Made by a program: the position numbers and the translations under genes. Shown here piece by piece: positions 6,728 through 53,352 of a stretch of 64,000 nucleotides of DNA. Source of the DNA: Macrostomum lignano (Eukaryota). The stretch lies in contig NIVC01003744.1 in NCBI GenBank assembly GCA_002269645.1, positions 15,262 to 79,261 on the forward strand, in the 5' to 3' direction. Each line of letters starts with the position of its first letter. Position 1 is the first letter of the stretch. The notes under the pieces were generated by a model that was given only the letters and a program-made list of their open reading frames with translations, searched no databases and was not told where the DNA came from.

Positions 6728-7313
<586 letters not shown>

Positions 7314-7341
7314 TGCATCGGTACATAAAGGTGGGCGGCTC

Positions 7342-11466: not shown

Positions 11467-14078
11467 ACAGCGTGAATCATCCATGTGGGGCTCAGGTGAC
11501 TGTGCGGATAGTGACGGATTTGGTACAGAAGCGAGCATTAGTGCTGATTAATTGTCGTCTTTGTTTCTCAAAGCCCTCAATCGTCGTGTCGCTCTTTTTC
11601 AACTCATCATGCTTTCGTTTTTTGCACCGCAGCCTCCCGCTCAGCCTCTTGTCTGCGGGTAATTGCTCCCCAGACAGAGACAAGTGCGGATGAACAGACT
11701 GCCGCATGACGGCTTAGTGCTGCCTCCTTGATCCGCTTCAATGAGGATTAACAACTTTCCTTTGTCCCAGCAGAGCAGCTATTGTATTCCGCACGGGCTG
11801 CTTTCATACGCTCACAGAATCCCAACCAGCCGCTCGGCTCCATCACCCGCTCCTCCCGGCATCCCGGAAGCAGACATTGTTGCAAACTTCAGGGAGGTTT
11901 TCAGCCGTCTCGGTAATAAGCGAGTGACTAAGCCTGCAGCGCTGATTTCAGGCTGCTGATATTTATAGACCTGCATCATTCCGCAGCACCCGATGCCGCT
12001 GATAAGAGCAGCGGTTCCGCATAGCAAATGTCACCCGGTGCGCCAGCCTGTCTGAGGGAGCCCCCGGCCACCCTCCGCCTGCCCAGGTAGCTCTTGAAGC
12101 GCGGCGCACAAATCCCCGGCGTGATTGGCGGCCGCGGTCGCGGCAAATTTACAGATTGCAGTGCCACCGTCAGTTTATCCAAGGCTCCCACTGGCCCTGC
12201 CTGCCCTCTCCCCAAACAAGCAGCCCCCGGCAACGTAAATCTTTTTACAGTCTCCACTTTCCCAATAATTTCTTCTTTTCTTCCCCCCCAGCCCAGCCTC
12301 CCCGCGACTGCAGGTAAATGATGATGATGCATCGCTAGCTTCCCTCCAAAGCAGCCATTTGCCGTTCATCTTAGAACACTCAGACGAACAACAGCAGCTG
12401 CAGCAGCAGCCCAGCTGCCCACCTGAACACCCCGGCTGTCCGTGCGAGAGTGTAGCTGCTACCAATTATCTAGGATAAATAAATGCGTCATCAATACCAA
12501 TCATAGACTGAAAGTGAATGCGTATTAAGGCATTTCTTTGCTAAAGCAAACGAAAACAAAACCAACTAATCTTTGCGTTGGCATTTCTTCCCGACCCGTC
12601 AACTGTCATTTCCTCAGCTCTCTAATCAGTTGGTGAAGTTGCAGGGCAGAGCCTCCATACAGCTGAGTCTACTGAAGGTATTTAAAGTTATAGAAAATCG
12701 GGTTCAAAAATCTAAAACTACGAGCTTACGGTTAGCGACCTAACATAGGCGACAAACTATTTCCTAAAGCCGAGCTCGTACTCACGCCAGAAGCAATTCC
12801 AGACAATTACAGCCGAATGTAACTGAATGCACGCTGTTGCTGCTCTCATTTGTGGACCAATTACCAGCAATTGCAGTCGGCTGAGATCTCTCAGGCCACT
12901 ATAGCGGCACTCGGCAAGCATTTCTTGGCGCAGACCGCGGCGCAAAATCTTGCAACATCTGGCTTTCTGTCCTGCAAACACAGATTTAAGAACTTAGTCG
13001 CTCTGGCGTCTTCTGCTCCTCCTCTTATAGAAGAGGTCAAGAAATTGTCGCCAACCCGTCAGGCCCGCCTCAAGATTTTGCTTTCAGGGTCACAAAAAGA
13101 AGACTGGCTAGAGAAAAAAGTAATTGCTTTTTGTGGCTTTGGGATCGCTGCCCTGCCGGGTCTGGGACATGACATTGTGCACACAGGCCGGGCCGGACTG
13201 AATGCATAATAATAATTATGGGAGCGAGCCTTGGGTTGGGAGTGGGCGGCGCATGAGAACTAAGGAAAAGAATAAGATAAGAACTGGCCATATCTTTCTG
13301 GCCAAGGCTGTGTGATGCAATTTATTCAAAGGAACGCAAGCCTTACATACATGTAAGCTGCGTATCGGTGCTCCTGCGACTGACCCCTTCCCATTCGGCT
13401 GAGTCATTGCCAACAATTGTGCTGTAATACATGGCTATGCATATGTATACACATGTGTAGAGTGCACGGGTCTCGGGCTGAAATGAGATCTCTTTATAGA
13501 TATTCCGCTACAGCCGTTTAGCAAACCTCTTTGCTAAATGGATGCCTCCCGAGTCCAGCATAATTGGATTCGCTCGCTGGAGCTCGCTCAAATCGCTTAG
13601 CGAAGTGCTAGCGGAATCCATGCATGTACATTCGGAATTGAGCGCACAGCATGTCATTAAATGACAGCTATATTGCCATGCATTTGTATATCTGCATCTG
13701 CATTTGTGTGAACAACAGTTTTTATCGATTTGAGCCATAAATCAGCCATCTGTATCATTAAATTTGAAAGCAATAAAATCATGTTGCTAAATGGGTTCTC
13801 ATGTGTAATAGGCGTGACACGCTTGTCAAATGAAATTATTAATTGAAAATTCACTGCATAAGACGCATGTGCCTTGAATTATTTCTTTAAACTTGTATTT
13901 TCCCGATCAAAATCTACAGATCATCAAAAAAGTCCAACAACTTTAACGAGGAATGCTTAACAATTGATTTATTAATTTTCTCCAAATATTCTCCACACAT
14001 GAATTCCGGCGGATTTCCCTTAGTGTCCTACTTACAGTAGTGACGTAATTAGTAGTAACCAATATTTGACTTCTTAGC

Positions 14079-14175
14079 GGCGCCCCTGTCCCTTGGTGGG
14101 CGCCCCTGTCCCTTGGTGGGCGCCCCTGTCCCTTGGTGGGCGCCCCTGTCCCTTGGTGGGCGCCCCTGTCCCTTC
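14079..14175. repeat. 20-bp minisatellite (GGCGCCCCTGTCCCTTGGTG), about 5 copies
   Basis: Direct tandem copies. Confidence 0.9.
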
Positions 14176-14914
14176 CTTGGTGCAAGGACCACTAGGAACA
14201 CTTCGTTATTGTTTAGTAGTCCTTGTATCGAGTCTTAAACCATCTCACCCTAAACCCTAAAATCGAATGACAGATTTTCATTAGCTTTCAACAAGCGTTA
14301 AGTCGCCTGTAAAATCTTGCATCTCATGGGCTGATTATTGTTGAAGAATTTTCATGCGCCATGCAAACTAAGATTCTAAGTAGCTTTGTGGAACAAAAAA
14401 TCAATTAAACAATAGGGAGGCGAGATGGGTAAGCGAATACCCTAAGAATATCCTAGGATATGCCTTGTGCGGCGCTAAACCCAACTCCTCACTCCTCGCG
14501 TTTGTTGATCTCAAGCCATAATGGCTCACAGGCAAAGGACCCAGCTCACTTCTAATGTTGGAGCACAGGCTCCTACTCCTACTTAAAACAGGGGACTGCT
14601 GCAGTCCCTGCCAGTTAGAGCCTCTCTGCTGAGTTTGGCTTGCCTTTCTCGCCTTTCAATTGTCAGTTTTTTTCTAGCTTCTCCGAAACTACTTGGAATC
14701 TATAGCAGCTCCTGGCTTTTGTCTTTCGCACATTGTTCCCAGGGAGCTCGCTTGAGAACGCAGTGCCGTTCCGCTACAGTGACTGCTGCAGCATCCCCAT
14801 GCGGCTCAAAGCCTCTTTAACTCAACTTTTTAGAATGAGATAAAAAGGAGTCAAGCAGAGACGATCTGGTCGGCTTACTTTGAGCAGCAGTTCGCCACCC
14901 AAAACAGTCTGAAA

Positions 14915-15697
14915 ATGTACCTCTCAGGCCCTCTGCTGATGCTGCTGTGCGCTCGGCTCTGCTGGGCTGCTGAGTTCGTCTTTGTCGGCTGCTACAGGGA
15001 TTTCACGGGTGGCGCCAGGGACCTCGGCGGACTGGACGGCATGTCCTCCATCGGGCCCTACGCGGTAGCTGCAAAAGGCGTGAACAGGGCCGACATGACG
15101 CTGCAGCTGTGCAGCCAGATCTGCGAGCTAGGCAACTTCAAGTACTTCGGTGCGCAATACAGCAGCCACTGCTTCTGTGGAAACTCGTACGGCAGTCAGG
15201 GCGGTGCTCCAGTGAGCGACTGCAACATGAACTGCGCTGGCAACGCTAGCCAGATCTGCGGCTCGGGAAGCCGAAATTCGGTTTACCAGAACTTTTACCT
15301 CCGTCCAAGTGAGCAGCGGCAACTATTGTGGCTGAGGGATTTGATGGATTTGATGGGTTTGGATGAATTCGGATGGACCCACTTGTGGCCATTTTAGTCT
15401 TCTTTGTTTCCCTAAGCCAAACATTGATAATCAACTGCACTGAACTGCGTTTTGCTCATTGCAGTCGGCAACAAATTCGTCGAAACTCCCCGCGTCTACC
15501 TGAACCCGACCTCATCTGGCGGGCCCTTCTACAGCACCTTGCAGCCGGCCAGAAGCCTCATCGACTGCCTGCTGAGTTGCGACGCGAGCTGCCAGGCTGT
15601 CCTGTTCCACCTGGACACCTGCTACCTGCTGAAACTGCCGGCTCTGCCGCAGGAGCTGGTCGGCTTTGATGGTGGGAAGTTCGTTGTCCGTGGCTAG
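14915..15697 (+). CDS. Secreted WSC-domain + PAN/apple-like protein, 2 exons (14915-15308, 15465-15697), about 208 aa
   Basis: Signal peptide; WSC motifs FVGCYRD...MTLQLCSQIC...YFGAQYSSHCFCGN...CNMNCAGNASQICG. Donor A|gtgagc and acceptor ttgcag| share phase 1. Exon 2 has DCLLSCDASCQAVLF...TCYL (PAN-like). Confidence 0.88.
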
Positions 15698-17407
15698 AAG
15701 TCCTGATGATTCAGCTCGTACGTTGCGCTGCGATCAACTTGGTTGTGTGTTTTCTGTTAATCCTTATGTTAGTCACTGTGTGGTTTTTCAGTCTCTAAAA
15801 AACATTGGCTTGTTCCTAATTTACAAAATCCCGTGTTAGATTAATTTTAAATTTTATTAGTTTCAGTAATAACTGTTCAAACCTTCAAGACCAAACACCT
15901 TTATTGTGATTGTGAACACTGGCTAATGTGCAGGTGTACGCTAGTTCAGATTAAGTTGCAATTAAAGTGCAAAATAATAGTAAACCTAAAGAGACTGTAT
16001 ATTTACATGTACATGTATTTGTCTAGAAACTGGGCTCGACCATTGTGGAGGATCCTCCTCCTTTTTAATATGTAATGTAGAAAGTTAAATATACGGGTCT
16101 CGGCTTCGATCTTAGCCACTCTCCAGTATATGGACAAAGTGCGCCTTGCTTGTCGTATTTGAATTGGTGGCAGCGTTTGTCGAACCTGACAGTCGATCGC
16201 TCCCTTTGCTGTTGAATGCAAGGACAACTGGCTATATACAGTGATCCTTGGTTGAATGGTTTGGAGATACGTGGGCTACTACTATACCTACATGTAGTAG
16301 CGACATCCGTTGTACGAGTATCTGCACACACGTTCTATAGATCATGGCTAGACCACCAGCTGGGGCATGACTTTGGTTGGCCAAGATCGGCACAATGCCC
16401 GATGGGAAATACATTTTCTGTAATTGTCTGTTCAATGGCGCACATACACTGTACATGTACACATGCATGTGGAAAACAGGTAGATAGGAAGCGACAAAGT
16501 AACTGTCGAAGATAAACAAAAATGGTTGCAATCGACAGTTGTGGTAAAGATATATGATGAATATTGGCATATTTTATATGAAATAACTCTATATTTTGTT
16601 TACTGAAAATTTTATAATTTACACGAATGGCAAAACAAAAAAGCAAAGCTAGCTATAGGCTGAGTCCAGAGTGTGAGAAAACGAAGTACGTAGAAAGGTG
16701 CAAGAAAACGATTAGTCACGATAGAAAATAAGTTTAGTTTCATTTGATCGGCTGCTGACCAATTCGGCGATAAAAAAATTGGCGACAAAGATTTATCGTG
16801 GTCAAATTCGGCGAAAGCAAATTTGGCGACAATATAGTTAAATTCTGTGACAAAGAAAAAATTGTTTATAACCTTACTAAATCTCTGAAAAAATAGTATT
16901 AGTTATTGTATACCATATTAGCTTTCCTTTTTAATTGAGTTTGTTTTATCCAATCAATATGCTGTGTTTTCAAATGTGCTTTCCAAGAAACATTCAAGTT
17001 CAATTCTTTCTTGCAGCTTGCAGACTGCCCAATGGATCGAATTGCATTTTTTCTATCAAAGGTCATGTCAAACTGACAACCAGATAAGATAGTAGGCATT
17101 TGACTTGTCATTGATTGACTCATTGTGTCTGGGTTACTGCTTACTAGGTAAAAGTTCTTTACAAAGGCTTTATGTGGATTTCAAATTATGCATATTTATT
17201 CAAAAATTCATTATTCGAAATGTAAGAAAACGAATCAATAATTGTAAAAATATAGTTCTTTATAAATATTTTTTCTTCATAATCATAAGACATAGTTAAA
17301 ATACTGAACTTTCATTTAAAATAAATATTGAAAAAAAAGCTTTGACTTTTACTAGTTTTAGTGCATTGCTGCTAGTAATGCCAGTATTTTTTAAACATAG
17401 GCCTAGG

Positions 17408-17694
17408 CATACATGCACAACAGTCGGCCGATCCGGCCGACCGATTTGGCGGCCAACCAAGAAAGTCGCAAAAATGCCCACCCAAGAAATACCCAAATAG
17501 TAGTACTAAGTAGCTGATGAAGCATTCTGGCTTAGTAAGACAGTCTTAGTTACTTCTGCTGTTTACCCAAAGTTGCGATAATTTTGCTTTAGGGTTTTTT
17601 ACATGTAAGTCGCATTTTTGGCCAAAAACTATGTCGCATTTTTGTTAAAACTAAGTCAAATGGCCAACCAAATTTTCGAGATTGCGCATGTATG
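17408..17694. mobile_element. hAT-type MITE, copy 2 (287 bp)
   Basis: TIRs CATACATGCACAA / TTGCGCATGTATG; 8-bp TSD GGCCTAGG at 17400-17407 and 17695-17702; colinear with copy 1. Confidence 0.9.
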
Positions 17695-18109
17695 GGCCTA
17701 GGTCTAGAGAAAAATCTTTTTGTAATTATATTAGCTTTCAATAAATTGAAACAGGAAAAACTGTCATCTAGAAATAGCTGTCTTTTTATAGAAATAGCTT
17801 ATTAAAAATATGACATTTAAAAATAATAGGAGCTTTTGTATTTTTTAAATTAAACAAAAATAGTTAGCTATAGCATAAAACATCATTATTAATATGCAAA
17901 GCCAATGTATATAATAATAAGCTATTTTTAATTCTTATCTATATTAGATAATAAATACAATTATTATATTTCATATTTATTTTTATTTATAGAATTATAT
18001 TAAATAATTAAGGAAATGTGGGATAAAAATGTGGAAAATTAAAATACAAAATATAAAAAAGTTTTATAATATTTTTATAAATATTATATAAAAATAATAT
18101 TTATATTTT

Positions 18110-18398
18110 ACTGCCCGCCCCCCCCCCCCAAATAGCTTCAAGACCAAAAATATTGTGCCCCCTAAAAACATAAATTTGCGTCCTCTAAACTTGATTCTTT
18201 GTCCCCAAATGCCTTTTTTGCACCCTTAAGCTTGATTTTTTGCCCCCAAATGCATTTCTTGTGCCCCTAAGCTTGATTTTTTGCCCCCAACATGCATTTT
18301 TTGTGCCCCTTAGCTTAAAATTTAGTGCCCTTTACACTCGTGTTGGCGCCCCAAACTTGGACTGCCCCCCCCCCCAAAATGAAACTAGATCCGCCACT
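18110..18398. mobile_element. Probable truncated MITE end with internal degenerate subrepeats of about 37 bp
   Basis: Repeated ctaagcttgattttttgcccccaa units flanked by poly-C, ending in ACTAGATCCGCCACT (terminus-like). No matching left end was found. Confidence 0.35.
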
Positions 18399-20731: not shown

Positions 20732-21228
<497 letters not shown>

Positions 21229-24200
21229 ATAAAGGTAGCAGGCAGGTAGGTAAGTGCAGATCTGCAGGATCTCTGGGGATTTCGCAGCAGACTCCTGAAA
21301 ACCAGCGCAGCTTTTATTTCTCACCCCCCCCCCTCAAATAAGTCGCACCTGCCCCATCTAGCAAGCCTGATTAGCAACGGATTATGATTGCGTTGTGGCT
21401 CTGCTTTGCCTTGTGATTAGCCGCCAATCCGCAGTATCAGGAAAGGGTCTCCCCGCCCTTGTTACGGCGAGACCCTGTGGATTTAACAAGCAGAACAGGC
21501 AGGCTGCCTGAGCACTCGCTGTGTAGGGCCGAGTGCTGCACACTGAAGTTCAGGTGCCCTCTTGCGCTCGCACTCGCACTGTGCAGAGTTCACTATTATT
21601 CTTGCGGACTCGCTGCTGAGCTGCACTTTTCTGACAGTAGGCAGAAATCTCACGCGCCAGATTTTCTACACCTTTTCCGCGGCCCAACCTTGGGGCTGAT
21701 AAGCGCTGGCTTTGTGGGCCGGGGCTAGGGCTGTTTTTCTAATTCCCCACCTCGTGCCCTCTGCGGACAAAGTTTGCTCATTTCCTTATTTGGATTGGGG
21801 AAGACAGAATGGGAAGCAATGCGAAGGGCACGCCCGGAGCCTCCTGACCGAGTTTTCTGTTTTCTTATGGCAAAAACTCGCATATTTTTTCCCTCTGGTC
21901 TTACACGGCCTAAGATTGTGCGGGAAATTTCCCATTGGTTTGAAGCTCATGCTCATATTTTTCCCATGCCTACCTTTTTGGTGTGATATATTTCTGTAAA
22001 TGATCTTTAACTGACTGATAACTGGGTTGCTTGGATTCATGAAGGAATTGCTGATTGCCCATGATTGACGTCTTGAAAAATGAATAACTCGAATGACAAG
22101 AAAATTTGTGACAGACTTGTGTTGACCAACCTGTCGGTAATAATTTATGAATATCACAATAAAACGAATATTGAAATGAAACTTTTTTATTTTTGATTTT
22201 ATAACCAGAATTTTTCATTTGTGAATAACAATTGGTGTTACAAATAGAAGTGGGATTCGGGAAACGGCTATATATATATAGCAACATTTAACAAGCAAAG
22301 TTTCTTTTTGTGCTTTTGTCTATTGATTTTGACTTTTTTTTCAATTTTCCTTATTTAGAACCCAAGTTGAAAAGTAGTGCTTTGCGTTTGCGGCGTGCGC
22401 GGAAACGGAAGGACAACAATAAACTTTTGCGGTAGGCTTTCATGAGAAACTGATGAAAATCCGAAGAAAAATAGCGTCAACAAATTTAATACTCAGCAAG
22501 CCTGTGGATGGGATATGGGTCTGTCGGGGGGCTCTGCAGCTGTCTGTCAGATCGCTAACATTACAAAATGCGCCAAAGCTCTCGAACTTGCAGCGCCACG
22601 TGTCGGGCAGAATGGACCCAGAGCATGCGGGTTGCGGCACCCTGCTGCAGTCAGCACAAAAATCTCAGGTCTTTCAGAAGCCGGCGGCTTATCATATTTT
22701 TGGTGGAAGGGGGGGGGGGGCTGACAGCGCGGGGGACGCAACGCACAGCTTAGCGTGTAAAATCAATGGCAATTCATCGGTAACGCTGCTGCAGCATCAG
22801 GGAGATTTCACAGTTAGATACAAAATCAGGCGAAACTGCCGGCGCTTTCCACGCGAGCTTCTAGGAACTTTTTTTGACAGTTTTTAACCTTCAGTAACTT
22901 ATTTGTAATCAGTTTCACTTCGCGGGCAAGCGCTAGCAAAAATATAGAAGCATAATCTGAGTTTTTATGTACACAACATTTACAATTTTTGTTTGCTTTT
23001 TACAATTAGTTATTTACACGGACGATAAGTGAGTCAACAAGGACAGCATGTGAATAAATGGCTATAAAAACAACTTAGAATCTACATTGTTTGAAACTAA
23101 CAATATTTATATAGCTAAGGAGCATAGTTGTGCTTAAAACTGGATCTCTCCATATTAATATTGGCTGCCAATGTCATTAGGTTGCGGTGTTTTTGAACTA
23201 TAATACAAAAATGATTTAGCTGTCACTCCTGCTCCTCCGGCCAAAACTAGGACTCGTACAGTAAGGTCAAAAGTGCCGCGAATACCTTCCGGTTATTCGA
23301 ATACAAAACACTGACAAATCAAAGGAAAGAGCAATGGCTGACCTGACTTTTTATGCTTAAAACTTGAAAGAACAATCGACAGCAAAAAGGAGTGAGAATG
23401 GTAAACAAAGGCCTGCAAATACCGACAAAGTATAAAAATATGCGCGCATCCGCGATTACCTAAACAAAAATTGCACTGGTATCTTCAATGCTGCAAATCG
23501 ATGGTAACGGATGAGAATTAAATGTGTTCGCGCCTATCAGGTGGCCAGAGAAGCGACCGATGGGGCAGATGCGAACTGTGTAAACATCAACACTTCACAA
23601 AGCCAAGTGATGCGCTCGCAACTACTGCACTCCAAAATAGGATAAAAGTTACTGGGAGGGGCGCTGAAGGTATTGAATTCACTTGGGGTTCATCGACGTG
23701 GGGCTCCGATGGAGTATATAAAGCAGATGGAAAATGTGAAAATTCCGATGGACCTCATGAAGCAGAACTCGCTATTGCTTTCACACAGTTCGGTTACAGT
23801 GCAAATAAATAATTCTCACTAAGTGTGCAGACTGGGTCTAAGCGGGTGACTTCAGATAGATACATAAATATTCAATAACACACTCTAGAAGAGAATGAAC
23901 GACGCATTCAGATTTGCAGCGTGGGAGCTGCAGCGGGTGTCTGGTTCATAACTAAAACATAATTAGGAATAAATGAATAAATAAGTATGGAGTATATAAT
24001 AGTTGAACAGTACTGCTAATATTCACACACAGACAGACTGCACTGGATCGAGCTCTGCCTCTTCTGCAAGCTCCATGTAGCGTCTCCGTCTCCGACCTCC
24101 TACCCTTCTCTGTATTCCATCGCCCTGGCTCGAGTATCAATTTACAGAAGACACTGAGTCCGTCCCGACCCAGTCAAGCAGGTGAGGCAAAGCCGAACCA

Positions 24201-30847: not shown

Positions 30848-31144
<297 letters not shown>

Positions 31145-31845: not shown

Positions 31846-32623
31846 TCTTCTTATTATTATTCTTCTTATTCTTCTTCTTCTTCTTCTTCTTCTTCTTCTT
31901 CTTCTTCTTCTTCGGGCGCGCTCGGGCCAGGGCCCATGGCACCGGCGTCAGACGGCGCCCGCCTTCCCGAGGAAGTTCAACACCGCGACGCAGTTCTCGA
32001 AAACTGCCGCGGGCTCCGGGCTTGGTCCCCAGAGGCGGCAGCGGTGTGGAGTCAGGGCGGGGCAGGAGATCAGCAGATGGGCCGCCGTCTCCTTTCCATC
32101 GCCACAGAAGCGGCAGGTGGGGGCCACGTCAACGCCGATGGCGGCCTGGAAGCCCCGCAGGGCCGGGCAGCGGTCGGCGCGCAGCTGGCAGATCAGCCGC
32201 TCCTGCCGCCGCGTGAGGTCATTCGTCGGCGGAGGCGGCAGGCGGCCCGCCGTGCAGGCAAGGTGCCAGACCAGCGAGCTCGTGCTCGCCGCCTCGGTGG
32301 CCGCCGCGTTGTAGGTCTGGTGCCAGCGGGCGAGGCAGTGGCGGCGGACGGCAGCCTGCGCGGCAGCCAACGGCACGGGCGCGGTGCCTTGCGCCAGCGT
32401 GGAGCCTCGCTTGACGATCTCGTCCACGGCCTCGTTGCCGGGGATTCCCGCGTGGCCAGGCACCCACTGCAGGTGGACCGAGGTTTTCCGGGCCGCGAGG
32501 TCGGCGAGGCTGGCCCAGACGGCGTCGATCATGGTGGCGCCCGTCGACCCAGGGCCGGACGCGAGCGCGCTGAGCGCGCTCAGGGAGTCAGAGCAGATGC
32601 GGACCGGCGACAGCTCTGCCGGG
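31846..32623 (-). mobile_element. 5'-truncated non-LTR retrotransposon (RNase H-bearing, I/Nimb/Ingi-like group) with (GAA)n tail
   Basis: ORF end has non-LTR RNase H motifs (ICSDSLSAL, LQWVPGHAGIPGNEAVD) and a CCHC knuckle (CRFCGDGKETAAHLLISCP). (TTC)n tail at 31846-31912. 14-bp TSD TCCGTGGCTTCCCT at 31832-31845 and 32624-32637. Confidence 0.93.
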
Positions 32624-32904
32624 TCCGTGGCTTCCCTCGGTGCATGTAACAATTGGCCTTCAATCACGTTTGCACGGGTAGGTAGGTCATAGTGACTGCT
32701 CAGGTGAGCGGGTCAGTTGCCGGTGTGACAGGCTTTTTCAAAAAGAAGTAGAGCAGCAATGAGAAGGCGTTGAAGAGGATAACGAAGGCGGAAGAAAAGA
32801 TGCAGATGGGTGCATGGCGGAGAAGGTTGCAGAGGAGGCAAGAGAATAGGCTCACTGTGACGTTCTTCACGTGTCCAAGAGTGAGGTATTCAAGAGCTAT
32901 TTTT

Positions 32905-33470
32905 GAGTGTGACAAATTCGAGAGTGACTTATTCGAGAGTGACATATTCGAGAGTGACATATGCGAGAGTAACTTATTCGTGAGTGACATATTCGAAAGT
33001 GATATTTTCAAGAGTGTTGATTTTTTCGAAAGTGACATATTCGAGAGTGATATATTCGAGAGTGACATATTCGAGAGTGACATATTCGAGAGTGATATAT
33101 TCGAGAGTGACATATTCGAGAGTGACATATTCGAGAGTGATATATTCGAGAGTGACATATTCGAGAGTGACATATTCGAGAGTGACATATTCGAGAGTGA
33201 CATATTCGAGAGTGACATATTCGAGAGTGACATATTCGAGAGTGACATATTCGAGAGTGACATATTCGAGAGTGACATATTCGAGAGTGACATATTCGAG
33301 AGTGACATATTCGAGAGTGACATATTCGAGAGTGACATATTCGAGAGTGACATATTCGAGAGTGACATATTCGAGAGTGACATATTCGAGAGTGACATAT
33401 TCGAGAGTGACATATTCGAGAGTGACATATTCGAGAGTGACATATTCGAAAGTGACATATTCGAGAGTGA
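32905..33470. repeat. 15-bp minisatellite (GAGAGTGACATATTC), about 37 copies
   Basis: Tandem repeat; source of the ESDIF / YSRVT / SLSNM ORFs. Confidence 0.97.
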
Positions 33471-36142: not shown

Positions 36143-37340
36143 CCGGCGGCAACAGCGGCATCTGCGGCGGCAACAGCGGCGGCAACAGCGGCGGCAACAG
36201 CGGCGGCAACAGCGGCGGCAACAGCGGCGGCAACAGCGGCGGATACAGCGGCAACAGCGGCAACAGCGGCGGATACAGTGGCAACAGCGGCAACAGCGGC
36301 GGATACAGCGGCAACAGCGGCAACAGCGGCGGCTGCGGCGGCTGCGGCGGCAACAGCGGCGGCAACAGCGGCAACAGCGGCAACAGCGGCGGCAACAGCG
36401 GCAACAGCGGCAACAGCGGCGGCAACAGCGGCGGCAACAGCGGCGGCAACAGCGGCGGCAACAGCGGCGGCAACAGCGGCGGCAACAGCAGCGGCAACAG
36501 CGGCGGCAACAGCGGCGGCAACAGCGGCGGATACAGCGGCAACAGCGGCAACAGCGGCGGCTGCGGCGGCTGCGGCGGCAACAGCGGCGGCAACAGCGGC
36601 AACAGCGGCAACAGCGGCGGCAACAGCGGCAACAGCGGCAACAGCGGCGGCAACAGCGGCGGCAACAGCGGCGGCAACAGCGGCGGCAACAGCGGCGGCA
36701 ACAGCAGCGGCAACAGCGGCGGCAACAGCGGCGGCAACAGCGGCGGCAACAGCGGCGGATACAGCGGCAACAGCGGCAACAGCGGCGGCTGCGGCGGCTG
36801 CGGCGGCAACAGCGGCGGCAACAGCGGCAACAGCGGCGGCAACAGCGGCAACAGCGGCGGATACAGCGGCAACAGCGGCAACAGCGGCGGCTGCGGCGGC
36901 TGCGGCGGCAACAGCGGCGGATACAGCGGCGGATACAGCGGCAACAGCGGCAACAGCGGCGGCTGCGGCGGCTGCGGCGGCAACAGCGGCGGATACAGCG
37001 GCAACAGCGGCAACAGCGGCGGCTGCGGCGGCTGCGGCGGCAACAGCGGCGGCAACAGCGGCAACAGCGGCGGATACAGCGGCAACAGCGGCGGATACAG
37101 CGGCAACAGCGGCAACAGCGGCAACAGCGGCAACAGCGGCAACAGCGGCGGATACAGCGCCGGCTTCGGCGGCAATAGCGGCGGATACAGCGGCGGATAC
37201 AGCGGCGGCTTCGGCGGCAACAGCGGCAACAGCGGCGGCTGCGGCGGCAACAGCGGCGGATACAGCGGCGGCTGCGGCGGACACAGCGGCGGACACAGCG
37301 GTGGATACAGCGGCAACAGCTGCGGCTGCGGCGACAACAA
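36143..37340. repeat. GC-rich triplet-based low-complexity array (GGC/AAC/AGC/TAC) with higher-order blocks
   Basis: Units such as ggcggcaacagc, ggatacagc and ggctgc; stop-free in several frames purely because of composition. Confidence 0.9.
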
Positions 37341-41420: not shown

Positions 41421-42648
41421 CTGAATCGAATTTTTTATTGTGCTGATAATTACACATTAAACTTAGTCAGGATCATTTGTTTACGAGCGTGAGATAAGCA
41501 AAAAGTTGGATTAAAAATATTTTTTCTCCATTCTTCCAATCTCCAAATGGATTGACTTCATCTAGCTCTCCCAGCCTCATAATGCAGCCTCACAGAAATT
41601 ATCTTGTAGCTGTGCGGAGGTTAAAAAACAACTCAATATTTGATGGAGCAATTTTTGTATGGGCTCCACATCAGCCTCTTTAATAATTCATGCCAATATC
41701 TACCATCCGTAGCAGGATGAAGTTTCTATATCCGCTTCCAGAGACAACTGCTGTGGGATTTGGGGAGCCTGCAGCGTTCCGCTGAGGCGCTTAAGCTTGA
41801 CGATGGGCCATGCAGAGTCCCCCTCCTGCCCATTTAATCCCAGTTTGATCCCAGTTGATTGATTCTTTTTATGCAGGCAGATATTTATCGACGCATAGCT
41901 GAGACTCACATATAGATGCTGGCTTAAAACAGTTGCCATGCGCGGCAAGTGCATCGAAATTGTTGACAACGTAAATTTGTAGCTGGGGACAGCTTGGCCA
42001 GCACCGGCTAACAAGAGCGACTTTTTTCCGGCTTCTCTTCAGTCTTAAATCCAGTAACAATTTCGCCAATCAGCAGTTCACTTCAATTAGTATGCTCAAC
42101 TATGAGAATTGCGTGTATGAATCAGAAGCAGATCTTGGGGCCCAGTGACCACACGTTAAGGTCCTTGCGAGTCCCTGTGAGTGAGAACTCGTCAAAGTCC
42201 TCTTGCAGCATCTGGAGACATTGGAAAGCATTTTATCGGGATGAAATCATGGCCAGGGCCACCATAGCGCCGCGTAAATGCATTTAAACGATCTGAATGT
42301 GTTCTTTTATTTTACGGTAGATCGACAACAGCAATTTCATGTTAAGTGCTTCCATTCTAAGTAGAAAATAAATAAGGCCTTGAGTTACTTCATCCACTGA
42401 CTCCCCAGCAACAGATTAGTCTACTTTTTTTGCAGATACGCTTGTCAGAACTATTGTTCATTGGCAAGCTGGCACAAGTGGGTGCTGGTATTTTACCCGG
42501 CCCAGCCACTGCGGCCAAACGACCAAACGGCCCCCATGCCTAGCCGACATAATATGAGAGGCTTGTTTCTTATTTTAACATCAAATCTTAATATTTTAAT
42601 GAAAAACAAATGCATGAATTACTATTGCCTCCGTATTTATACCTGTAT

Positions 42649-43028
42649 ATCTTGTACCTGTAGCCGTGCTCCTTGAATTTATATCTTGTACCTGTAGCCG
42701 TGATCCTTGAATTTATATCTTGTACCTGTAGCCGTGATCCTTGAATTTATATCTTGTACCTGTAGCCGTGCTCCTTGAATTTATATCTTGTACCTGTAGC
42801 CGTGCTCCTTGAATTTATATCTTGTACCTGTAGCCGTGATCCTTGAATTTATATCTTGTACCTGTAGCCGTGATCCTTGAATTTATATCTTGTACCTGTA
42901 GCCGTGCTCCTTGAATTTATATCGGTTGTACCTGTAGCCGTGTTCCTTGAATTTATATCTTGTACCTGTAGCCGTGCTCCTTGAATTTATATCTTGTACC
43001 TGTAGCCATGTTTCTGGAATTTATATCT
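42649..43028. repeat. 34-bp minisatellite (TTGTACCTGTAGCCGTG[C/A]TCCTTGAATTTATATC), about 11 copies, at the start of dispersed-repeat copy 2
   Basis: Period 34 (42661 to 42695); a single homologous monomer sits at about 41143-41178. Confidence 0.92.
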
Positions 43029-43853
43029 TCTAAACGAAATATAAACGAAATATTTAAGCCAATAATCCTGAAACTCCTGAATAATGGACTTTACGCAATG
43101 TTTTATGGCAAACAGAAATATAGAATATATCTGATGCTCCTGAGTAGTGTTTATCCTGAGTCAGCAGTCAGGCTGGTGGAGCATAAATGCACCCCAAAGG
43201 ATAAGAAAACTTATCGCTGCATATTGGCAGCAGGATTGCCTGTTCCACCTCATCCGAATCGCTAATTGCCGGTACGGTTGCAGGTGCTAATAAAGATATA
43301 AAGATAACCTGTTTGATTATCTTTATAGCAAACAATTCATTTTTGCAAGTGTTAAAATTTTGGTCAGATTTCAAACTGCCGGCCGTAGGCGGGCATACAG
43401 AACCCAGTCAACAATCAATCAATGACTTTATATTTAATTATGATTATACAGAACTACATAGAGCATATAAGTATGTATGGCTTAGAGAAATATTTCTGCC
43501 CAGTAATCTAAAATTTAAACAAATAGATTTTTAAAAATTAAATAGAAAAATTCAATCGTTTGTTATACTTTCTAAGATAATTTTAAATGCTAACGTGACT
43601 ATAAGTGAATTAATTCATAAATGAAGAATGATATATGAATACGTAATGTTTGATATGATCAATACAAACTACAAAAATAGGACTGCAAAAAAGATTTTTA
43701 AGTACTGAGGTTAGAAAAACAGTCCACACCGCAGTCAAGTCTTATACATGTACTAAATATCAACAAATCAAGTGTGGCTCATACTTGAGTGTCCTACTGG
43801 TCAACGGACTATAAAAATTCAACGTATATTTCGGGGCACCACAGTACACAGCT

Positions 43854-44711
43854 TCATTGCAAGCTTCTGACAAGCCGTTCTACCACTTCAGCAACAGCAC
43901 ACAGTGCGATTAGCGGCAGTAAAATATAATAAGAGACAAAGCATAATAAAGTCCATGCTACAGCAAGTAGGGACAGGAAAATATTCCAAGAAAATGAAAT
44001 TACCAAGTAGAGTACGTAACAAGAAAAGGCGGCCGCCAAGAAGCCACAGAAGGCTTCAGGCCAGCTCTGCAAATCGCACTGAACTCCTTTGTCGACCATC
44101 GCACTCGTTTCGCCAGAGGTAAACGTCACCAAGTACCTTGGAGCCGCCTGCTCAGCTCGGTACACAATGTACTCATCGTTGAGCACACCTCCGCTGCTCT
44201 TGGTGGCCCGTTTGGCGAACACAGAGTCGAAGCCTCGAGTTGTCACCTGCTCAAGGTCAAGCCCAGGACTGGACGCTTTGCAAACCAAGGGTTTTCCGAT
44301 GGCTACGTAGCACAACAGCAGATACTTTGTTCCATTCTCTCGGCAGTACTGAGCACTCTTGGTGCTGTCGGTGGCAAAGTAGATCCCCGCACCGAACATG
44401 CCTCCCCGGCCGACCCGAAAGCCGTCTTCGATAATTTTTTCAGCATTTTGTCTCGTCGTCCCGTGAAAAAGCAGCTCTGGCTGGCGATCAGCGCTGTGCA
44501 GCTCGGGTTGGCAGTTCCTCAGCCTGCGATCCAGCTCTGGGTTCTCGATTCTCTCGATTGACTGAATCTGAATCCGGATCCGATGCTCCGGTTTGATGTA
44601 CCGCTCCACTCTGTCCCGAACTGTCAGATACTCTTGAACCGTGTCATCGCTGGCCTCGGTGAGGTGTGTCCGGCGGACTTTGCTTTGTGTCCAGTTTGGC
44701 GGAAGGTTGTT
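43854..44711 (-). CDS. Terminal exon encoding a PARP-type ADP-ribosyltransferase catalytic domain plus a C-terminal hydrophobic (TM) tail; 5' exon(s) not located
   Basis: Acceptor ttcttcag| at 44712; open 285 codons to the stop. LFHGT, GMFGAGIYFA, KSAQYC, LLLCYVAIGK, FDSV and NDEYIVY give an H-Y-E triad; followed by long hydrophobic segments. Confidence 0.9.
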   Translation of the reverse strand, partial: NNLPPNWTQSKVRRTHLTEASDDTVQEYLTVRDRVERYIKPEHRIRIQIQSIERIENPELDRRLRNCQPELHSADRQPELLFHGTTRQNAEKIIEDGFRVGRGGMFGAGIYFATDSTKSAQYCRENGTKYLLLCYVAIGKPLVCKASSPGLDLEQVTTRGFDSVFAKRATKSSGGVLNDEYIVYRAEQAAPRYLVTFTSGETSAMVDKGVQCDLQSWPEAFCGFLAAAFSCYVLYLVISFSWNIFLSLLAVAWTLLCFVSYYILLPLIALCAVAEVVERLVRSLQ

Positions 44712-45353: not shown

Positions 45354-46386
<1,033 letters not shown>

Positions 46387-47680
46387 GTTAATGTCTGTGT
46401 GTTTAGTTGGACCTTTCGTCAGTATTTTTCCCTCCTTACATGGACCACCCGTTTTAACTGGACCCCTTACGTGGACCACCATATATATTTCTACATGAAA
46501 TGTTAAACATGTTTTACATAGACCTATGATGGAGTCTAGTAGAAAGCGATCGTGGTCCCTAAAGTTGCTCACTCGAAGTTCTTTTGGTTCCAAGTTACAA
46601 CGGTTTCAGTTTACCTGGACCTTTTACTCGGTCCACCTAAACCGATTTTCGAGGTCCACGTAAATCGAAATTTCACATGACCCATTTTCAAAAACTGTCT
46701 GTTTGGTGTCTGTTTTGTGTCTGTTAGATAAATTGGTAGCTAAATTTGTCGATTTGTTGTAATCGTGAAAACGTTGTTTTTTGCGATAAAATAACAAATT
46801 TGTTAGCAACAATATGTACGAGCGTATAATGGATTTGGGGCTTGGACGACAAAGACGGAACTATTATATGCTATTAATTTCAAGACAATTTTTATAAAAA
46901 ATCACGATATTGCATCACAGCATTGAGTCTCCTCTCCACCTTGAGTTACTAAAAATTCCTTTAAGATCGCAATTGTAAGTGATGCAACTGGCCACCTGTG
47001 CTGCAGGGAACGATGTATTTACACAATCACACACTATGAAGTAATGATTGATAACAGGCTGTTTCGTACGAGCTATATACCTGTATCTTATTATGTCAAA
47101 GCCAAAACGAAAGCCATATTTGTATCGCTATCTTTGAAAGTCGTAGCTTATCCGAACATTTAAGTGTCTTTAACCAAATTCATTGGACGGAAAATGCAGA
47201 GTACATCGTGTGATTGGACTAAGTGAGCCGCTCTTATGCTTAAAGGAGCCTCACACTCCTTGAAAGATAGCGGCCTTCAGTGGTTCCCCTAAAACGATGT
47301 CCTGTAGCACAGACTAATCTCTACCCCCTTATTTTAGCATGACTGCTTGTCTCATTGTACACAGCAATGAACACTAGTTGTTTGCTTTTTATTAAAACAG
47401 CTGATGTCGGGAGATAAGAATTCTAGAATTTTCTGTTTCAAGACTGTACAGTGTGAATAGACACTGGCCAACCAGTGGGGTTTCTCAATGGGCACTGTAC
47501 ATTTGCCAGCCACAGAATCTCGCTAACCAATAGGAAAAGGTCTAATGAAATTGGCGTGGGGTTGCTTGCCTATAGAAGCCTCGCAATCAGGTCCATTTAA
47601 ACCCAGACTTACTAAGACCAGAGTTTATTTAGGCCCCGTTGCAATTGCAACTGCAAGTATATAGGAAGAATATCCTGTAG

Positions 47681-50600
47681 AAAACGGCCAAAATATTTTA
47701 CTTCGAAAGGATTGAGAAGTGCTGCAAAAAGAAGTTTTTTATAAAGTGGACTGGCTATCCCAGGTAAGAAAATTTTCAAAAAGAATTACTTCTAATTCTA
47801 AATAATATTTTACTTAACTTGTAAAAAATTTAAGGCTTTACTGCTTTTCATTTTTAACATGCTTTGTAGGAGTAAAAACACATGGGAGCCGAAAAAAATA
47901 TCCCCGAGAACATACTAAAGGCTCTGCACTCTGAGTGCGGTAAGCTATCCTCTACAGTCAATATCAATAGCAAACAATAGCACATTTGCATCAACAACTT
48001 ATACAGTATTACATTATTTTATACATTTCAGGCAAGTGCTTCCCTAGAACAAAAGCTAAGGAAAAGTCAGTAGGTTTTGTTGTAACGTGTTATTAAAATT
48101 TCTGGTTTTTGCGCTTTACTTAAACTATGAACAAATATTGTGGACACAATTCTCCTTTACGTTTTTCTTTGATTCGAAATTCCTATACAGCTACAAAATG
48201 ATTAGCTTCATACTCGTGCTTCAAAGTAAACAAACAGTAATTGATTAGGGTCCAGCTAACACACCGTGACACCAACAGACAGACGCAGTCAGTTTAAGAT
48301 GGTGGCCCGATCTGGGGTCCAGCTAACACACCGTGACACCAACAGACAGACGCAGTCAGTTTAAGATGGTGGCCCGATCTGGGGTCCAGCTAACACACCG
48401 TGACACCAACAGACAGACGCAGTCAGTTTAAGATGGTGCCCCGACCTGGGGTCCAGCTAACACACCGTGACACCAACAGACAGACGCAGTCAGTTTAAGA
48501 TGGTGCCCCGACCTGGGGTCCAGCTAACACACCGTGACACCAACAGACAGACGCAGTCAGTTTAAGATGGTGCCCCGACCTGGGGTCCAGCTAACACACC
48601 GTGACACCAACAGACAGACGCAGTCAGTGTAAGATGGTGCCCCGATCTGGGGTCCAGCTAACACACCGTGACACCAACAGACAGACGCAGTCAGTTTAAG
48701 ATGGTGGCCCGATCTGGGGTCCAGCTAACACACCGTGACACCAACAGACAGACGCAGTCAGTTTAAGATAGTGCCCCGACCTGGGGTCCAGCTAACACAC
48801 CGTGACACCAACAGACAGACGCAGTCAGTTTAAGATAGTGCCCCGACCTGGGGTCCAGCTAACACACCGTGACACCAACAGACAGACGCAGTCAGTGTAA
48901 GATGGTGCCCCGATCTGGGGTCCAGCTAACACACCGTGACACCAACAGACAGACGCAGTCAGTTTAAGATGGTGGCCCGATCTGGGGTCCAGCTAACACA
49001 CCGTGACACCAACAGACAGACGCAGTCAGTGTAAGATGGTGCCCTGATCTGGGGTCCAGTCCAGCTAACACACCGTGACACCAACAGACAGACGCAGTCA
49101 GTTTAAGATGGTGCCCTGATCTGGGGTCCAGCTAACACACCGTGACACCAACAGACAGACGCAGTCAGTTTAAGATGGTGGCCCGATCTGGGGTCCAGCT
49201 AACACACCGTGACACCAACAGACAGAAGCAGTCAGTTTAAGATGGTGGCCCGATCTGGGGTCCAGCTAACACACCGTGACACCAACAGACAGACGCAGTC
49301 AGTGTAAGATGGTGGCCCGATCTGGGGTCCAGCTAACACACCGTGACACCAACAGACAGACGCAGTCAGTTTAAGATGGTGCCCTGATCTGGGGTCCAGC
49401 TAACACACCGTGACACCAACAGACAGACGCAGTCAGTTTAAGATGGTGCCCTGATCTGGGGTCCAGCTAACACACCGTGACACCAACGGACAGACGCAGT
49501 CAGTTTAAGATGGTGGCCCGATCTGGGGTCCAGCTAACACACCATGACGTGAGACTGACAACTAGAGACAGACACAAAAAGTCTAGCCAACTTACAAAAT
49601 ATTAGTTCGCAATTAGAGCTTTCGTTTTAACGGAAGGAATTTTTAATATACACACCAAGCAGCAAGACTCAACCAGTCAGTCTTCTCAGCTGCAACAAGA
49701 CACGGCCAGTCAGCAGAAGCAGCAACAGAACCCGGCCACTCAGTCTCCTCAGCCGCATCAAGACACGGCCAGTCAGCAGAAGCCGCATCAAAACTCGGCC
49801 AGTCAGCAGAAGCCGCATCAAGACTCGGCCAGTCAGCAGAAGCCGCATCAAGACTCGGCCAGTCAGCAGAAGCCGCATCAAAACTCGGCCAGTCACTCTC
49901 CTCAGCTGCAGCAGAACTCGGCCAATAAGTCAAAGAAGCAACGTCGCTCGACCAGTCAGCAGAAGCAGCATCAAGACTCGGCCATTCAGCAGAAGCAGCA
50001 TCAAGACTCGGCCAGTTTTTCTCCAGAGCAGCACGAATCGGCCAAGAGAGCTCGAAACAAGTCCAGATCGGTCAAGAGGAAAGGAAGCAAGCAGTCCCGA
50101 TGTGGAAGTGCTGACTCGTGTGAAGCTGGCTCCTCTCATCAAGCCGCTGCTAAAGGCAACTCTTCTGCTGTAAGTACTTTGTTGCGTTGCACTTTTACGC
50201 CTTTGTTCATAACTGCACTGCAACTCGCACAATTATTTCTCCTAACAGTGTTTGAATTTAAAGAAGACAGTCTTAGATTTTGCCCTTATCTAAGGTCCAG
50301 CTAACACACCGTGACACCAACAGACAGACGCAGTCAGTTTAAGATGGTGGCCCGATCTGGGGTCCAGCTAACACACTGTGACACCAACAGACAGACGCAG
50401 TCAGTTTAAGATGGTGGCCCGATCTGGGGTCCAGCTAACACACCGTGACACCAACAGACAGACGCAGTCAGTTTAAGATGGTGGCCCGACCTGGGGTCCA
50501 GCTAACACACCGTGACACCAACAGACAGACGCAGTCAGTTTAAGATGGTGGCCCGATCTGGGGTCCAGCTAACACACCGTGACACCAACAGACAGAAGCA

Positions 50601-51804
50601 GTCAGTTTAAGATGGTGCCCCGACCTGGGGTCCAGCTAACACACCGTGACACCAACAGACAGAAGCAGTCAGTTTAAGATGGTGCCCCGATCTGGGGTCC
50701 AGCTAACACACCGTGACACCAACAGACAGACGCAGTCAGTGTAAGATGGTGCCCTGATCTGGGGTCCAGCTTATAAGCTCTCATTCTCAGACTCTCTTAA
50801 GGTCCGATATTCCGCCAGTTCTGATTATCTCTTTAAAATAAATTGAAATGTAGTGCCTGTGAATAGTATAAGAATTTTTCCCTTTTGTTTTGTTTTGTAT
50901 GTTTTTAGTGGTACTTACATTTTAGGCAGTCGACAGCAGAAACGAGTTTTCAACGAATTGGTTTCAAGACAAAAAGTTTTTTCGCATATCCAAAGGCACC
51001 AACCGTGATCGGCTATGTGAAGAAGGCGTGAAGTATTTTGGTGGCACTATTGCTTCGTTTTTTTCAAATCAGGTAAGCGACTTTAGTATTTGTTTTTGTC
51101 GAAGTTAGTTTTGGTAGTAAACGTTAAGTTGTTTTTTAGTTCTATTGTTGGTATCAATTTAAGTGAGCGTATTCGAGCGTATCTTTTAACGCTTCTTAAT
51201 CCTAATGATAGAACAATTTGATTGCATTTTCCTGAACGTTATACAAGTATTTTATGTAATTTAATTAATTTCATAGGTGGACTTCGTCGTCTCAATTTCA
51301 ACACCTGCGAACTGTTCGGAAATGTCCATTTCGAACATATCGGCAACAGTGCAGTTGCCACGGGGATGTGCGATGCAAAAAATGGCTACCGCAGCCAGTG
51401 CATATTCTGGCTTTTGCTCTGCCGATGACGATGTTGCAGAAACAAGGCTCCTCGGAATTCCAAATATCAGTCTACTAGAGGTTCGAGACTATTTACGTGA
51501 CCGCGGCTATATTGCTAGTCGAGCCGACTCAGCTAATGCGGCAGGATCATTTGCATTAAATCACGGCAAAATCCTGTCTGGAACAGCAGTTGTTATTGGG
51601 GATGCAAGCCGTCGGGGTGGACCAATTTTTTCTGAAAATCTACAAGTGTTCGACTATTTTACTAATCCGGATTTATACGGCCTTCGAGAATCCAAGGAGC
51701 AGGATCAACGAATCCTGGAAAAAAATTTCAATGTTTTGTGTTTCTTTAAAATTGTTTCCTTTACGTTAAATCGATTATTTCCAATTGCCTCCGTCTGTGT
51801 TTAA
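47681..51804 (+). CDS. Spliced gene inside the TIR element: chromodomain + Q/S/K-rich linker + Dbf4-like BRCT (motif N) and motif-M-like region. Exons 47681-47763, 47870-47939, 48032-48069, 49660-50169, 50926-51072, 51277-51804; start exon not found
   Basis: GT-AG junctions are phase-consistent once one A is restored at 47892-47898. Chromo motif FYFERIEKCCKKKFFIKWTGYP-RSKNTWEP. BRCT-like FQDKKFFRISK...EEGVKYFGGTIASFFSNQVDFVVS, then QLPRGCAMQKMA, VAETRLLGIPNISLLEVRDYL and AVVIGDASRRGGPIF. Confidence 0.7.
48248..49548. repeat. 67-bp tandem array, about 19 copies, intronic; unit contains the element-terminus motif GGTCCAGCTAACACAC
   Basis: Period 67 (48251, 48318, 48385); unit ggggtccagctaacacaccgtgacaccaacagacagacgcagtcagtttaagatggtggcccgatct. 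Confidence 0.97.
50294..50770. repeat. Second array of the same 67-bp unit, about 7 copies, intronic
   Basis: Same unit as 48248-49548, in the next intron. Confidence 0.97.
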
Positions 51805-52096
51805 CCTTAGCTGTCAGTGTTAGGTTTACGCTAAATTTGGTCTATGATTTTGAATCGGTGTGAAGGTCCACCTAAAACACGTTCTGTCGGTGTCCATATA
51901 AACCGGTCCAGTTTAAGTAATAAAAATACTGGTGCAATTTCCACTAATGAGAGCCTCTGTCAGCTTCAAAAGTAAACAAACTTTTGAAGATCTTTCGTGA
52001 ACTAAAAAAAGGCTCTATTAAAAGTAAAAAAGTCGGTGGTCCATGTAATGCATTAAAACTTCTGAGGTCCAGCTAAACACACAGACACTTGTATGT

Positions 52097-53352
<1,256 letters not shown>

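Follow-up and report, generated by a model that had tools for sequence, protein, structure and literature searches.

A 64-kb window of the genome of the flatworm Macrostomum lignano (contig NIVC01003744.1, positions 15,262 to 79,261 of the forward strand) contains, at 46392-52087, a 5.7-kb unit that is probably an internally deleted, non-autonomous member of a Macrostomum mobile-element family bounded by terminal inverted repeats (TIRs). The full form of the family would carry a long gene with a tyrosine-recombinase-like domain, and the recombinase would act in trans on deleted members such as this one; we take the full-length form to be a 16.3-kb M. lignano copy with one long multi-exon gene. 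Hereafter, the window is the whole stretch of 64,000 nucleotides, positions refer to it unless another locus is named, and the 5.7-kb unit is called the window copy. A first-pass annotation of the window, made from its letters alone, had described the unit as a non-autonomous, cargo-carrying DNA transposon that may target TCTG microsatellites. The ends of the unit comprise the following features:

46392-46414, + strand: left TIR, sequence TGTCTGTGTGTTTAGTTGGACCT
46392-46730, + strand: left subterminal region, with seven GGTCCANNTAAR motifs and a mini-repeat
51865-52064, + strand: right subterminal region, with GGTCCA at 51865, 51905 and 52038, all in the right-end orientation
52065-52087, + strand: right TIR, sequence AGGTCCAGCTAAACACACAGACA

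The two TIRs are 23 bp long and pair at 22 of 23 positions (46392-46414 against 52065-52087), as the first-pass annotation had seen. With three mismatches allowed, the 18-bp TIR core TGTGTGTTTAGYTGGACC occurs at just two sites in the window, against a chance expectation of 0.05. Further inside, a second inverted match that had also been noticed earlier is perfect over 14 of 14 positions (46436-46449 against 52035-52048) and sits within a 31-nt arm pair that is 77% complementary. The hexamers TGGACC (left 270 bp) and GGTCCA (right 225 bp), rightly described as opposed at the two ends, proved to be part of a longer motif, GGTCCANNTAAR, which has 10 matches in the 64-kb window where 0.17 would be expected. 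All 10 are confined to the unit: seven lie in the left 270 bp (five inverted and two direct), two at the right end and one internally. One pair, at 46610-46641, faces inward with 8 bp between its members, and the mini-repeat (TGTCTGTTTGG)n of the left subterminal region occupies 46696-46725. No transposase-like open reading frame (ORF) was found within the unit and no direct repeat beside its TIRs, where the left flank reads ...TCTGTGTTAA and the right flank CTTGTATGTCTA..., in agreement with the earlier statement that both a transposase and a target-site duplication (TSD) are lacking. Alternative boundaries were tried for a TSD of TTAA (piggyBac), TA (Tc1/mariner), TWA (PIF) or 8 bp (hAT), and none fits; Helitron/Helentron and foldback readings are ruled out by the terminal structure. 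Outside the unit, no further copies were found in the window.

The second member of the family lies at the M. lignano locus NIVC01000029.1:548919-575932 (L009), which encodes the 1222-amino-acid protein P0033 (BOX15_Mlig000236g2). By blastn, L009 and the window match at four places only, and three of these coincide with the unit's left end, its left subterminal region and its right end. Read directly, the sequence of L009 shows the following element, in L009 coordinates:

1911-18198, 16,288 bp: L009 element, bounded by TIRs

On its left side, about 400 bp of (TCTG)n and the linker TTCTAC precede the left TIR TGTCTGTGTGTTTACGTGGAC, which begins at 1911; on its right side, the right TIR GGTCCCGCTAAACACACAGACA ends at 18198 and is followed by the linker GTCGTAAGAG, by TGTCTGTCTGTCTG and then by unique DNA. 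The right flank thus holds about 3.5 TCTG units, oriented like the left tract, so in both copies TCTG flanks the element left and right, and on the strand that carries the gene. All four termini of the two copies have the same outer 14 bp, TGTCTGTGTGTTTA, and alignment of the 300-bp ends (left, L009 1888-2262; right, L009 17950-18240) revealed motif blocks that are kept between spacers that are randomized. A (TGTCTGTTTG)n repeat about 300 bp inside the left end, which resembles the outer part of the TIR, is common to both copies (window 46696-46725, L009 2216-2257). Beside the TIRs of the L009 copy there is again no direct repeat, with the limit that a TSD made of pure TCTG units outside the linkers would escape detection. 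Neither nucleotide nor translated comparison finds any similarity between the two copies in the DNA beyond their TCTG tracts, and the copies therefore lie at different loci. Homologous termini thus recur as paired ends at another M. lignano locus, which supports the first-pass view of the window copy as a non-autonomous member of a TIR-bounded family.

The interiors of the two copies are collinear, in the order left end, Dbf4 motifs N and M, right end, with window 50977-51669 corresponding to L009 ~9168-9761. The stretch from ~9760 to ~17990 of L009 (about 8 kb) has no counterpart in the window. Both termini, the promoter, two intronic minisatellites and the exons as far as motif M persist in the window copy, which has lost about 8 kb that include the recombinase part. 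Its interior is organized as follows:

47882-51804, + strand: five-exon gene (exons 47882-47939, 48032-48069, 49660-50169, 50926-51072 and 51277-51804)
48248-49548, + strand: intronic 67-bp minisatellite, 19.3 copies, its units starting with the right-terminus-like sequence GGGTCCAGCTAACACAC
50294-50771, + strand: second intronic array of the same 67-bp unit, 7.1 copies

All four introns of the gene are GT-AG and their phases are consistent, which yields a Dbf4-like protein of 426 amino acids; a 5′ untranslated exon probably ends at 47764. By tblastn, the homology to Dbf4 maps to 50944-51075 (motif N) and 51277-51669 (motif M). Exactly three relatives of the window protein came out of an exhaustive HMMER search over 1.8 billion representative proteins (E 1.8e-13 to 6.6e-10), all of them M. 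lignano proteins of DBF4 type that match over residues 13-191 of a 224-amino-acid query (phmmer). P0029, a relative that overlaps the N-terminus of P0033, and P0030 carry the DBF4-type zinc finger (zf-DBF; E 6.5e-16 for P0029, 4.2e-12 for the other hit) and a weak BRCT match; the Pfam BRCT match of the window protein alone is weak (E 0.14). Neither tblastn nor a regular-expression search finds motif C, the DBF4-type zinc finger (PF07535), anywhere in the window, and the ORF closes in a non-homologous tail about 60 bp short of the right subterminal motifs. A word-indexed homologue search with the last two exons gave no match, and exact-protein look-ups of four window ORFs gave no records. P0030 is likely the host Dbf4 of M. 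lignano: its locus (L008) has a ferlin-like gene (C2 and FerI domains) on one side and an Ariadne-type gene on the other, and it contains neither the termini of the unit nor TCTG tracts. What the first-pass annotation took for cargo is instead the 5′ remnant of the family's own long gene, given its collinearity with the gene of the 16-kb relative.

The intronic minisatellites resemble the termini. The start of the 67-bp unit is identical to the right terminus (52061-52082) at 20 of 22 positions, and what follows this terminus-like start are decayed CAGA units, which can be aligned with the left junction when the latter is read outward; the unit aligns locally to both termini. L009 holds at least 10 intronic arrays of a 71-bp unit that contains GGTGGTCCACCTAAC and is homologous to the 67-bp unit of the window (37 of 69 alignment columns identical). 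Between 3920 and 14160 of L009 there are at least eight tandem modules, each composed of a 76-amino-acid Ser/Arg-rich exon and an intron with a 71-bp array, and found both upstream and downstream of the Dbf4 domain; one module is interrupted by an extra ~1.7-1.9 kb at L009 ~4580-6450, which may be a nested insertion. The family illustrates that terminal motifs can seed intronic minisatellites and punctuate kilobase-long microsatellites, which bears on the repeat-rich genomes of Macrostomum.

The C-terminal domain of P0033, the part that the window copy has lost, is probably a tyrosine recombinase, to judge by its sequence. P0033 contains in order Dbf4 motifs N, M and C (zf-DBF is detected in the L009 ORF with E 3.4e-9), repeated Ser/Arg-rich exons, two Cys/His fingers and a C-terminal region in which the segments RASEPFKL, GKRAQRPVPLL, SPYVF, LSSTNLRKYIAT and LGHSLNVHHNFY follow one another in the canonical order. 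A tyrosine-recombinase consensus pattern, which in Escherichia coli XerD picks out R148, K172, H244, R247, H270 and Y279, finds R806, K854, T922, R925, H951 and Y960 in P0033 (R-K-xxR-H-Y), with spacing like that of XerD. Shuffled P0033 sequences gave 0 matches in 300,000, a significance that is overstated because the pattern was written after the sequence had been seen. We further compared P0033 with a profile of 28 tyrosine-recombinase catalytic domains (Additional file 4 of PMC3212892). An hmmsearch without filters scored P0033 at 5.4 bits, rank 6 of 2001 when set among 2000 shuffles, and hhalign gave an alignment of 151 columns that spans the entire template and keeps the catalytic residues in register (score 20.0, P 0.01; reached by 1 of 300 shuffles). 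In tblastn against plasmids, the sole matches (E 5-9) fell in unannotated DNA beside fieF and are spurious, and a scan of viral contigs for the recombinase was negative. The first-pass annotation had suggested looking for longer copies that encode a DDE transposase; the 16-kb relative is a longer copy, and it bears the tyrosine-recombinase signature instead. Pfam finds neither a DDE nor a reverse-transcriptase domain in P0033 and 14 ORFs or reading-frame segments of L009. One ORF, L009 4983-5303, had a hAT-like look (hAT dimerization domain) that Pfam does not confirm.

The unit is flanked by tracts and linkers, as follows:

45354-46157, + strand: distal left tract, with TG-run punctuation as in the right tract
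46158-46391, + strand: proximal left tract, consisting of TGTTAATG, (TCTG)55 and the linker TGTTAA
52088-52099, + strand: right linker, CTTGTATGTCTA
52100-53349, + strand: right (TCTG)n tract beyond the linker, oriented as the left tract

Counted as a whole, the left (TCTG)n tract (45354-46386) is 1033 bp long with 260 units and the right tract (52090-53349) is 1260 bp long with 316 units, both on the same strand, which confirms the kilobase-long, equally oriented tracts reported earlier. In the distal left tract and the right tract alike, blocks of 53-55 TCTG units are separated by TGTGTGTG(TG), as would be expected if an insertion had split one genomic tract, and the distal left tract is probably a pre-existing genomic microsatellite. 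The TIR does end in TGTCTG/CAGACA, as had been noted, but the unit is not embedded directly in the tracts: between each TIR and the perfect tract stands a short linker that is not TCTG, TGTTAA at the left end and CTTGTATGTCTA at the right end. Compared between the two copies, these linkers show partial conservation. On the right, where linker and TIR end together form the palindrome CAGACA-CTTGTA-TGTCTA, the linker is partly kept in the L009 copy as GTCGTAAGAGTG; on the left, the linker plus the TGTCTG abutting the TIR recurs 228 bp upstream, within the proximal left tract. Written as T[GC]TTA[AG]TGTCTG (left linker and first TIR bases), this sequence has just two occurrences in the window, at 46158 and 46386, and five in the L009 copy's left tract. 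These marks could be unoccupied or scar copies of a recombination site, or products of unequal exchange; their recurrence fits the recombinase model without proving it. The proximal left tract may accordingly be borne by the element, or be an empty or scar copy of the recombination site, and some of the left TCTG tract may move together with the element instead of being its target.

Two further (TCTG)n tracts in the window are free of any element, at 6729-7313 (- strand, ~147 units) and 30848-31144 (+ strand, ~74 units), and T[GC]TTA[AG]TGTCTG occurs in neither; both are without TTA[AG]TG punctuation. The first ends in ...TCTGTGTTTATAA, a weak echo of the TIR start, and together the TCTG tracts make up about 5% of the window. 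That such tracts are common is what one would expect if nothing had moved here and the TCTG repeats were ordinary microsatellites beside a small duplicated Dbf4-like gene family, perhaps derived from a domesticated recombinase element, with conserved palindromic protein-binding motifs in its flanks and introns; the existence of only two, deeply diverged copies, with no empty site observed, also suits such an immobile family. We nevertheless judge this explanation improbable, for it accounts poorly for inverted termini that keep their outer 14 bp unchanged at four ends next to spacers that are randomized, for a deletion derivative that retained both ends, for two copies equally oriented to TCTG on both sides and for the conservation of tyrosine-recombinase-like catalytic residues. 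As for the TCTG targeting suggested by the first-pass annotation, the association does recur at a second, independent copy, and a preference would rest on these two copies only.

A tyrosine-recombinase mechanism fits the anatomy of the family, and a tyrosine recombinase would explain the missing TSD without a cut-and-paste transposase. The anatomy, the second copy at another locus, the collinearity and the deletion are observed. Recombinase activity, a circular intermediate, the choice of target and any mobility at the present day are inferred, and would combine in the following scheme. A recombinase supplied in trans would bind the TIRs and the GGTCCANNTAAR motifs and excise a circle, in which the two TIRs would meet to form a palindromic core, ...CACACAGACA-spacer-TGTCTGTGTG..., with the predicted circle junction reading ...CTAAACACACAGACA-spacer-TGTCTGTGTGTTTAG.... 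The core would then recombine with a TGTCTG-type half-site in a TCTG tract, giving (TCTG)n-spacer-TGTCTGTGTG as the left product and CACACAGACA-spacer-TGTCT(G/A)TCTG as the right one. Both copies show the junction forms that this model gives, namely TCTG in the same orientation on both sides and no TSD. A wider proposal, which we put forward tentatively and consider less likely than not, is that the family represents an undescribed group of animal tyrosine-recombinase transposons with 23-bp TIRs, arrays of 12-bp motifs at the ends and in intronic minisatellites, integration into TCTG through a TIR-spacer-TIR circle, and a Dbf4-like fusion. If this is true, the Dbf4-like module could tie the element to the Cdc7/DDK replication machinery, for example so that the circle is replicated or recombination is timed to S phase.

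Cryptons are DNA transposons that use a tyrosine recombinase (Goodwin 2003; Kojima & Jurka 2011, PMC3212892), and we regard the Crypton group as the closest known kind to the Macrostomum family. Like Cryptons, the L009 relative has a tyrosine-recombinase-like domain with no reverse transcriptase found in P0033 and the 14 ORFs or segments; no TSD was found; a short matching sequence in direct orientation, here TGTCTG/TCTG units, stands at both boundaries and may be the substrate of recombination; and non-autonomous deletion derivatives exist. Cryptons are defined as lacking both TIRs and long direct repeats, whereas the Macrostomum family has TIRs. The similarity of Crypton recombinases to P0033 is at the profile and motif level only. 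The Macrostomum element also differs in its size of 16 kb with more than 10 introns, compared with 2.5-6 kb for Cryptons, and in the joining of its recombinase to a Dbf4-like module. Cryptons are thought to integrate via short matching sequences and without a TSD (PMC3212892), and for an active element of Chlamydomonas, CryptonF-1_cRei, integration at a short matching sequence and clean excision have been reported (PMC9977147). The termini of all animal Cryptons listed in Additional file 1 of PMC3212892 are given as "n.d.", and the listed Cryptons with TIRs are CryptonF-2_PI (602 bp) and the Mariner-Crypton composite MarCry-1_FO (16 bp) (PMC3212892). Insertion into (TAACC)n repeats is reported for endogenous nimaviruses that encode tyrosine recombinases (PMC10871703). 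The Macrostomum family shares with them the pairing of a tyrosine recombinase, here a probable one, with insertion into a simple tandem repeat, as well as Cys/His zinc-binding motifs; nimaviruses are giant viral genomes of crustaceans, whereas the Macrostomum element has no viral genes.

Several observations weigh against the reading of the window copy as a derivative of a tyrosine-recombinase element. Searches of Pfam, NCBIfam, PHROGs and PDB sequences do not detect the recombinase domain of P0033, its pairwise comparison with XerD (BLASTP, Smith-Waterman) is not significant, a single-sequence AlphaFold model is unusable (predicted local distance difference test score, pLDDT, 35), and the first His of the HxxR motif is replaced by Thr (T922). 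With the pattern and profile signal on one side and the negative database, pairwise and model searches on the other, we grade the recombinase assignment as probable, with moderate support. The junction spacers differ within each copy, TGTTAA and CTTGTA in the window, TTCTAC and GTCGTAAGAG in L009, although a simple conservative exchange predicts identical ones. As the right flank of L009 has only ~3.5 TCTG units, targeting of TCTG cannot be told apart from TCTG borne by the element. Cryptons usually lack TIRs, in contrast to the 23-bp TIRs and subterminal arrays of the Macrostomum family. Finally, the two copies described here are the only ones known, and they are deeply diverged (~32% amino acid identity in the Dbf4 part); neither an empty site nor a polymorphism was seen.

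The unequal spacers are among the points that suit a different kind of mobile circle, one that would enter by Campbell-type homologous recombination between element-borne and genomic (TCTG)n, leaving the TIRs and motifs to serve elsewhere, for instance when the circle is replicated or segregated with the help of the Dbf4-like protein. Direct TCTG tracts on both sides without a TSD would follow from such a process, as would the element-type punctuation of the proximal left tract next to the genomic-type punctuation of the distal one. It would, however, leave unexplained both the invariant 14-bp termini and the CAGACA-spacer-TGTCT palindrome at the right junction of both copies, and the right flank of L009, with ~3.5 units only, speaks against it as well; we consider it very improbable.

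Other systems resemble the Macrostomum family in part. Micron, reportedly described by Akagi et al. in 2001, is said to be a rice miniature inverted-repeat transposable element (MITE) of about 400 bp that targets the (TA)n microsatellite, is non-coding and has no known autonomous partner. The window copy is likewise non-autonomous, embedded in one type of microsatellite and without a recognizable TSD, and differs from Micron in its length of 5.7 kb, its gene remnant and its candidate autonomous relative. With Pack-MULEs it shares a TIR-bounded unit that has spliced gene sequence inside and no transposase; the Macrostomum gene, by contrast, is common to both members and continues into a recombinase-like ORF in the long copy, and is therefore not a captured host fragment. 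En/Spm (CACTA) and Ac/Ds (hAT) elements have TSDs of 3 bp or 8 bp and DDE transposases. They resemble the Macrostomum copies in combining a short TIR with many ~12-bp subterminal motifs, in both orientations and within about 300 bp of the ends, and they differ in that neither a TSD nor a DDE enzyme was found in the latter. This likeness brings up the alternative that the unit is a non-autonomous cut-and-paste transposon of the DDE class (hAT-, CACTA- or P-like) with a preference for TCTG, mobilized by a transposase encoded elsewhere and carrying the Dbf4-recombinase-like gene as a passenger. A short TIR with two-orientation subterminal arrays is the classical architecture of En/Spm, Ac and P, and the competing assignment of a tyrosine recombinase is only moderately supported. 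Neither copy has a TSD, though, and no DDE domain was found in P0033 and the 14 scanned ORFs or segments of the 16-kb relative; the partial conservation of the linkers outside the TIRs is unexpected for true flanking DNA, and the same long gene filling both copies fits a function encoded by the element better than a passenger. A DDE origin therefore seems to us unlikely.

The window copy can be read as a defective DNA element of the tyrosine-recombinase type that has TIRs and an association with a simple repeat. In the literature searched, we found no report linking Dbf4 with a transposon recombinase and no description of tyrosine-recombinase elements in Macrostomum. Almost nothing is known of where animal tyrosine-recombinase DNA transposons end and what they target. 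With its clear ends, candidate core site, simple-repeat target and pair of a candidate autonomous and a non-autonomous copy, the family makes the mechanism directly testable in a model flatworm amenable to transgenesis, and a Dbf4-like module attached to a recombinase would point to a connection between a mobile element and the control of replication origins.

A possible distant member of the family was seen in another species. A metagenome scan with the 22-bp terminus gave five contigs that represent one intronic locus of another AT-rich animal; the match is suggestive but of low complexity and is not relied on. The contigs (JGI) are:

L001: Ga0056130_1045768
L002: Ga0056129_1038122
L003: Ga0209680_1087377
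L004: Ga0056114_1038212
L005: Ga0209787_1005812

At 480-700 of L002, a MITE-like insert of about 100-170 bp lies in an intron after a coding exon (WD40-like by eye). Its right end, GGTCCAACTAAACACACAGACA, runs straight into (CAGA)n/(GA)n. Repeats of the TGTCTGTA type come before its left end, ...CCTGTGTAGTGGGACTGTTTGGTAAT, which looks like that of L009 (GTGGACTTTTTGGAAGT); the repeats flanking the insert are inverted and not direct. Judged by these ends, the insert may be a distant family member.

Spliced genes occur in the remainder of the window, together with numerous mini- and microsatellites and a piece of a non-LTR retrotransposon. A 251-amino-acid ORF at 43854-44609 (- strand), 750 bp from the left TCTG tract, encodes a PARP catalytic domain (Pfam E 2e-27) with a hydrophobic C-terminal tail. 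It is 50-66% identical to six M. lignano paralogues, its best matches, two of which are on one contig; two M. lignano PARP loci that were compared with the window (L006 and L007) have no termini of the unit and no TCTG tracts. The probable retrotransposon fragment, at 31948-32667 (- strand), has an RNase H domain and a weak zf-RVT match (E 0.001, below the Pfam cut-off). Ordinary host genes are represented by an ORF with a plakin-type SH3_10 domain at 61337-61975 (- strand; E 3e-5) and by one with a WSC domain and a hydrophobic, signal-peptide-like N-terminus at 14915-15397 (+ strand; E 1e-15). Dispersed repeats at 7692-7988 and 17422-17695 are 86-87% identical to L008 7741-8037, and another at 59498-59595 is 90% identical to L007 19508-19605. 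Minisatellites are unusually dense, with arrays of 0.4-1.2 kb at 3786-4542, 5543-5993, 10783-11466, 32905-33470, 36144-37314, 42646-43029 and 54313-54668 (periods, in that order, of 33, 50, 18, 15, 12, 34 and 37 bp), and a (TAGA)n tract of 500 bp occupies 20732-21231.

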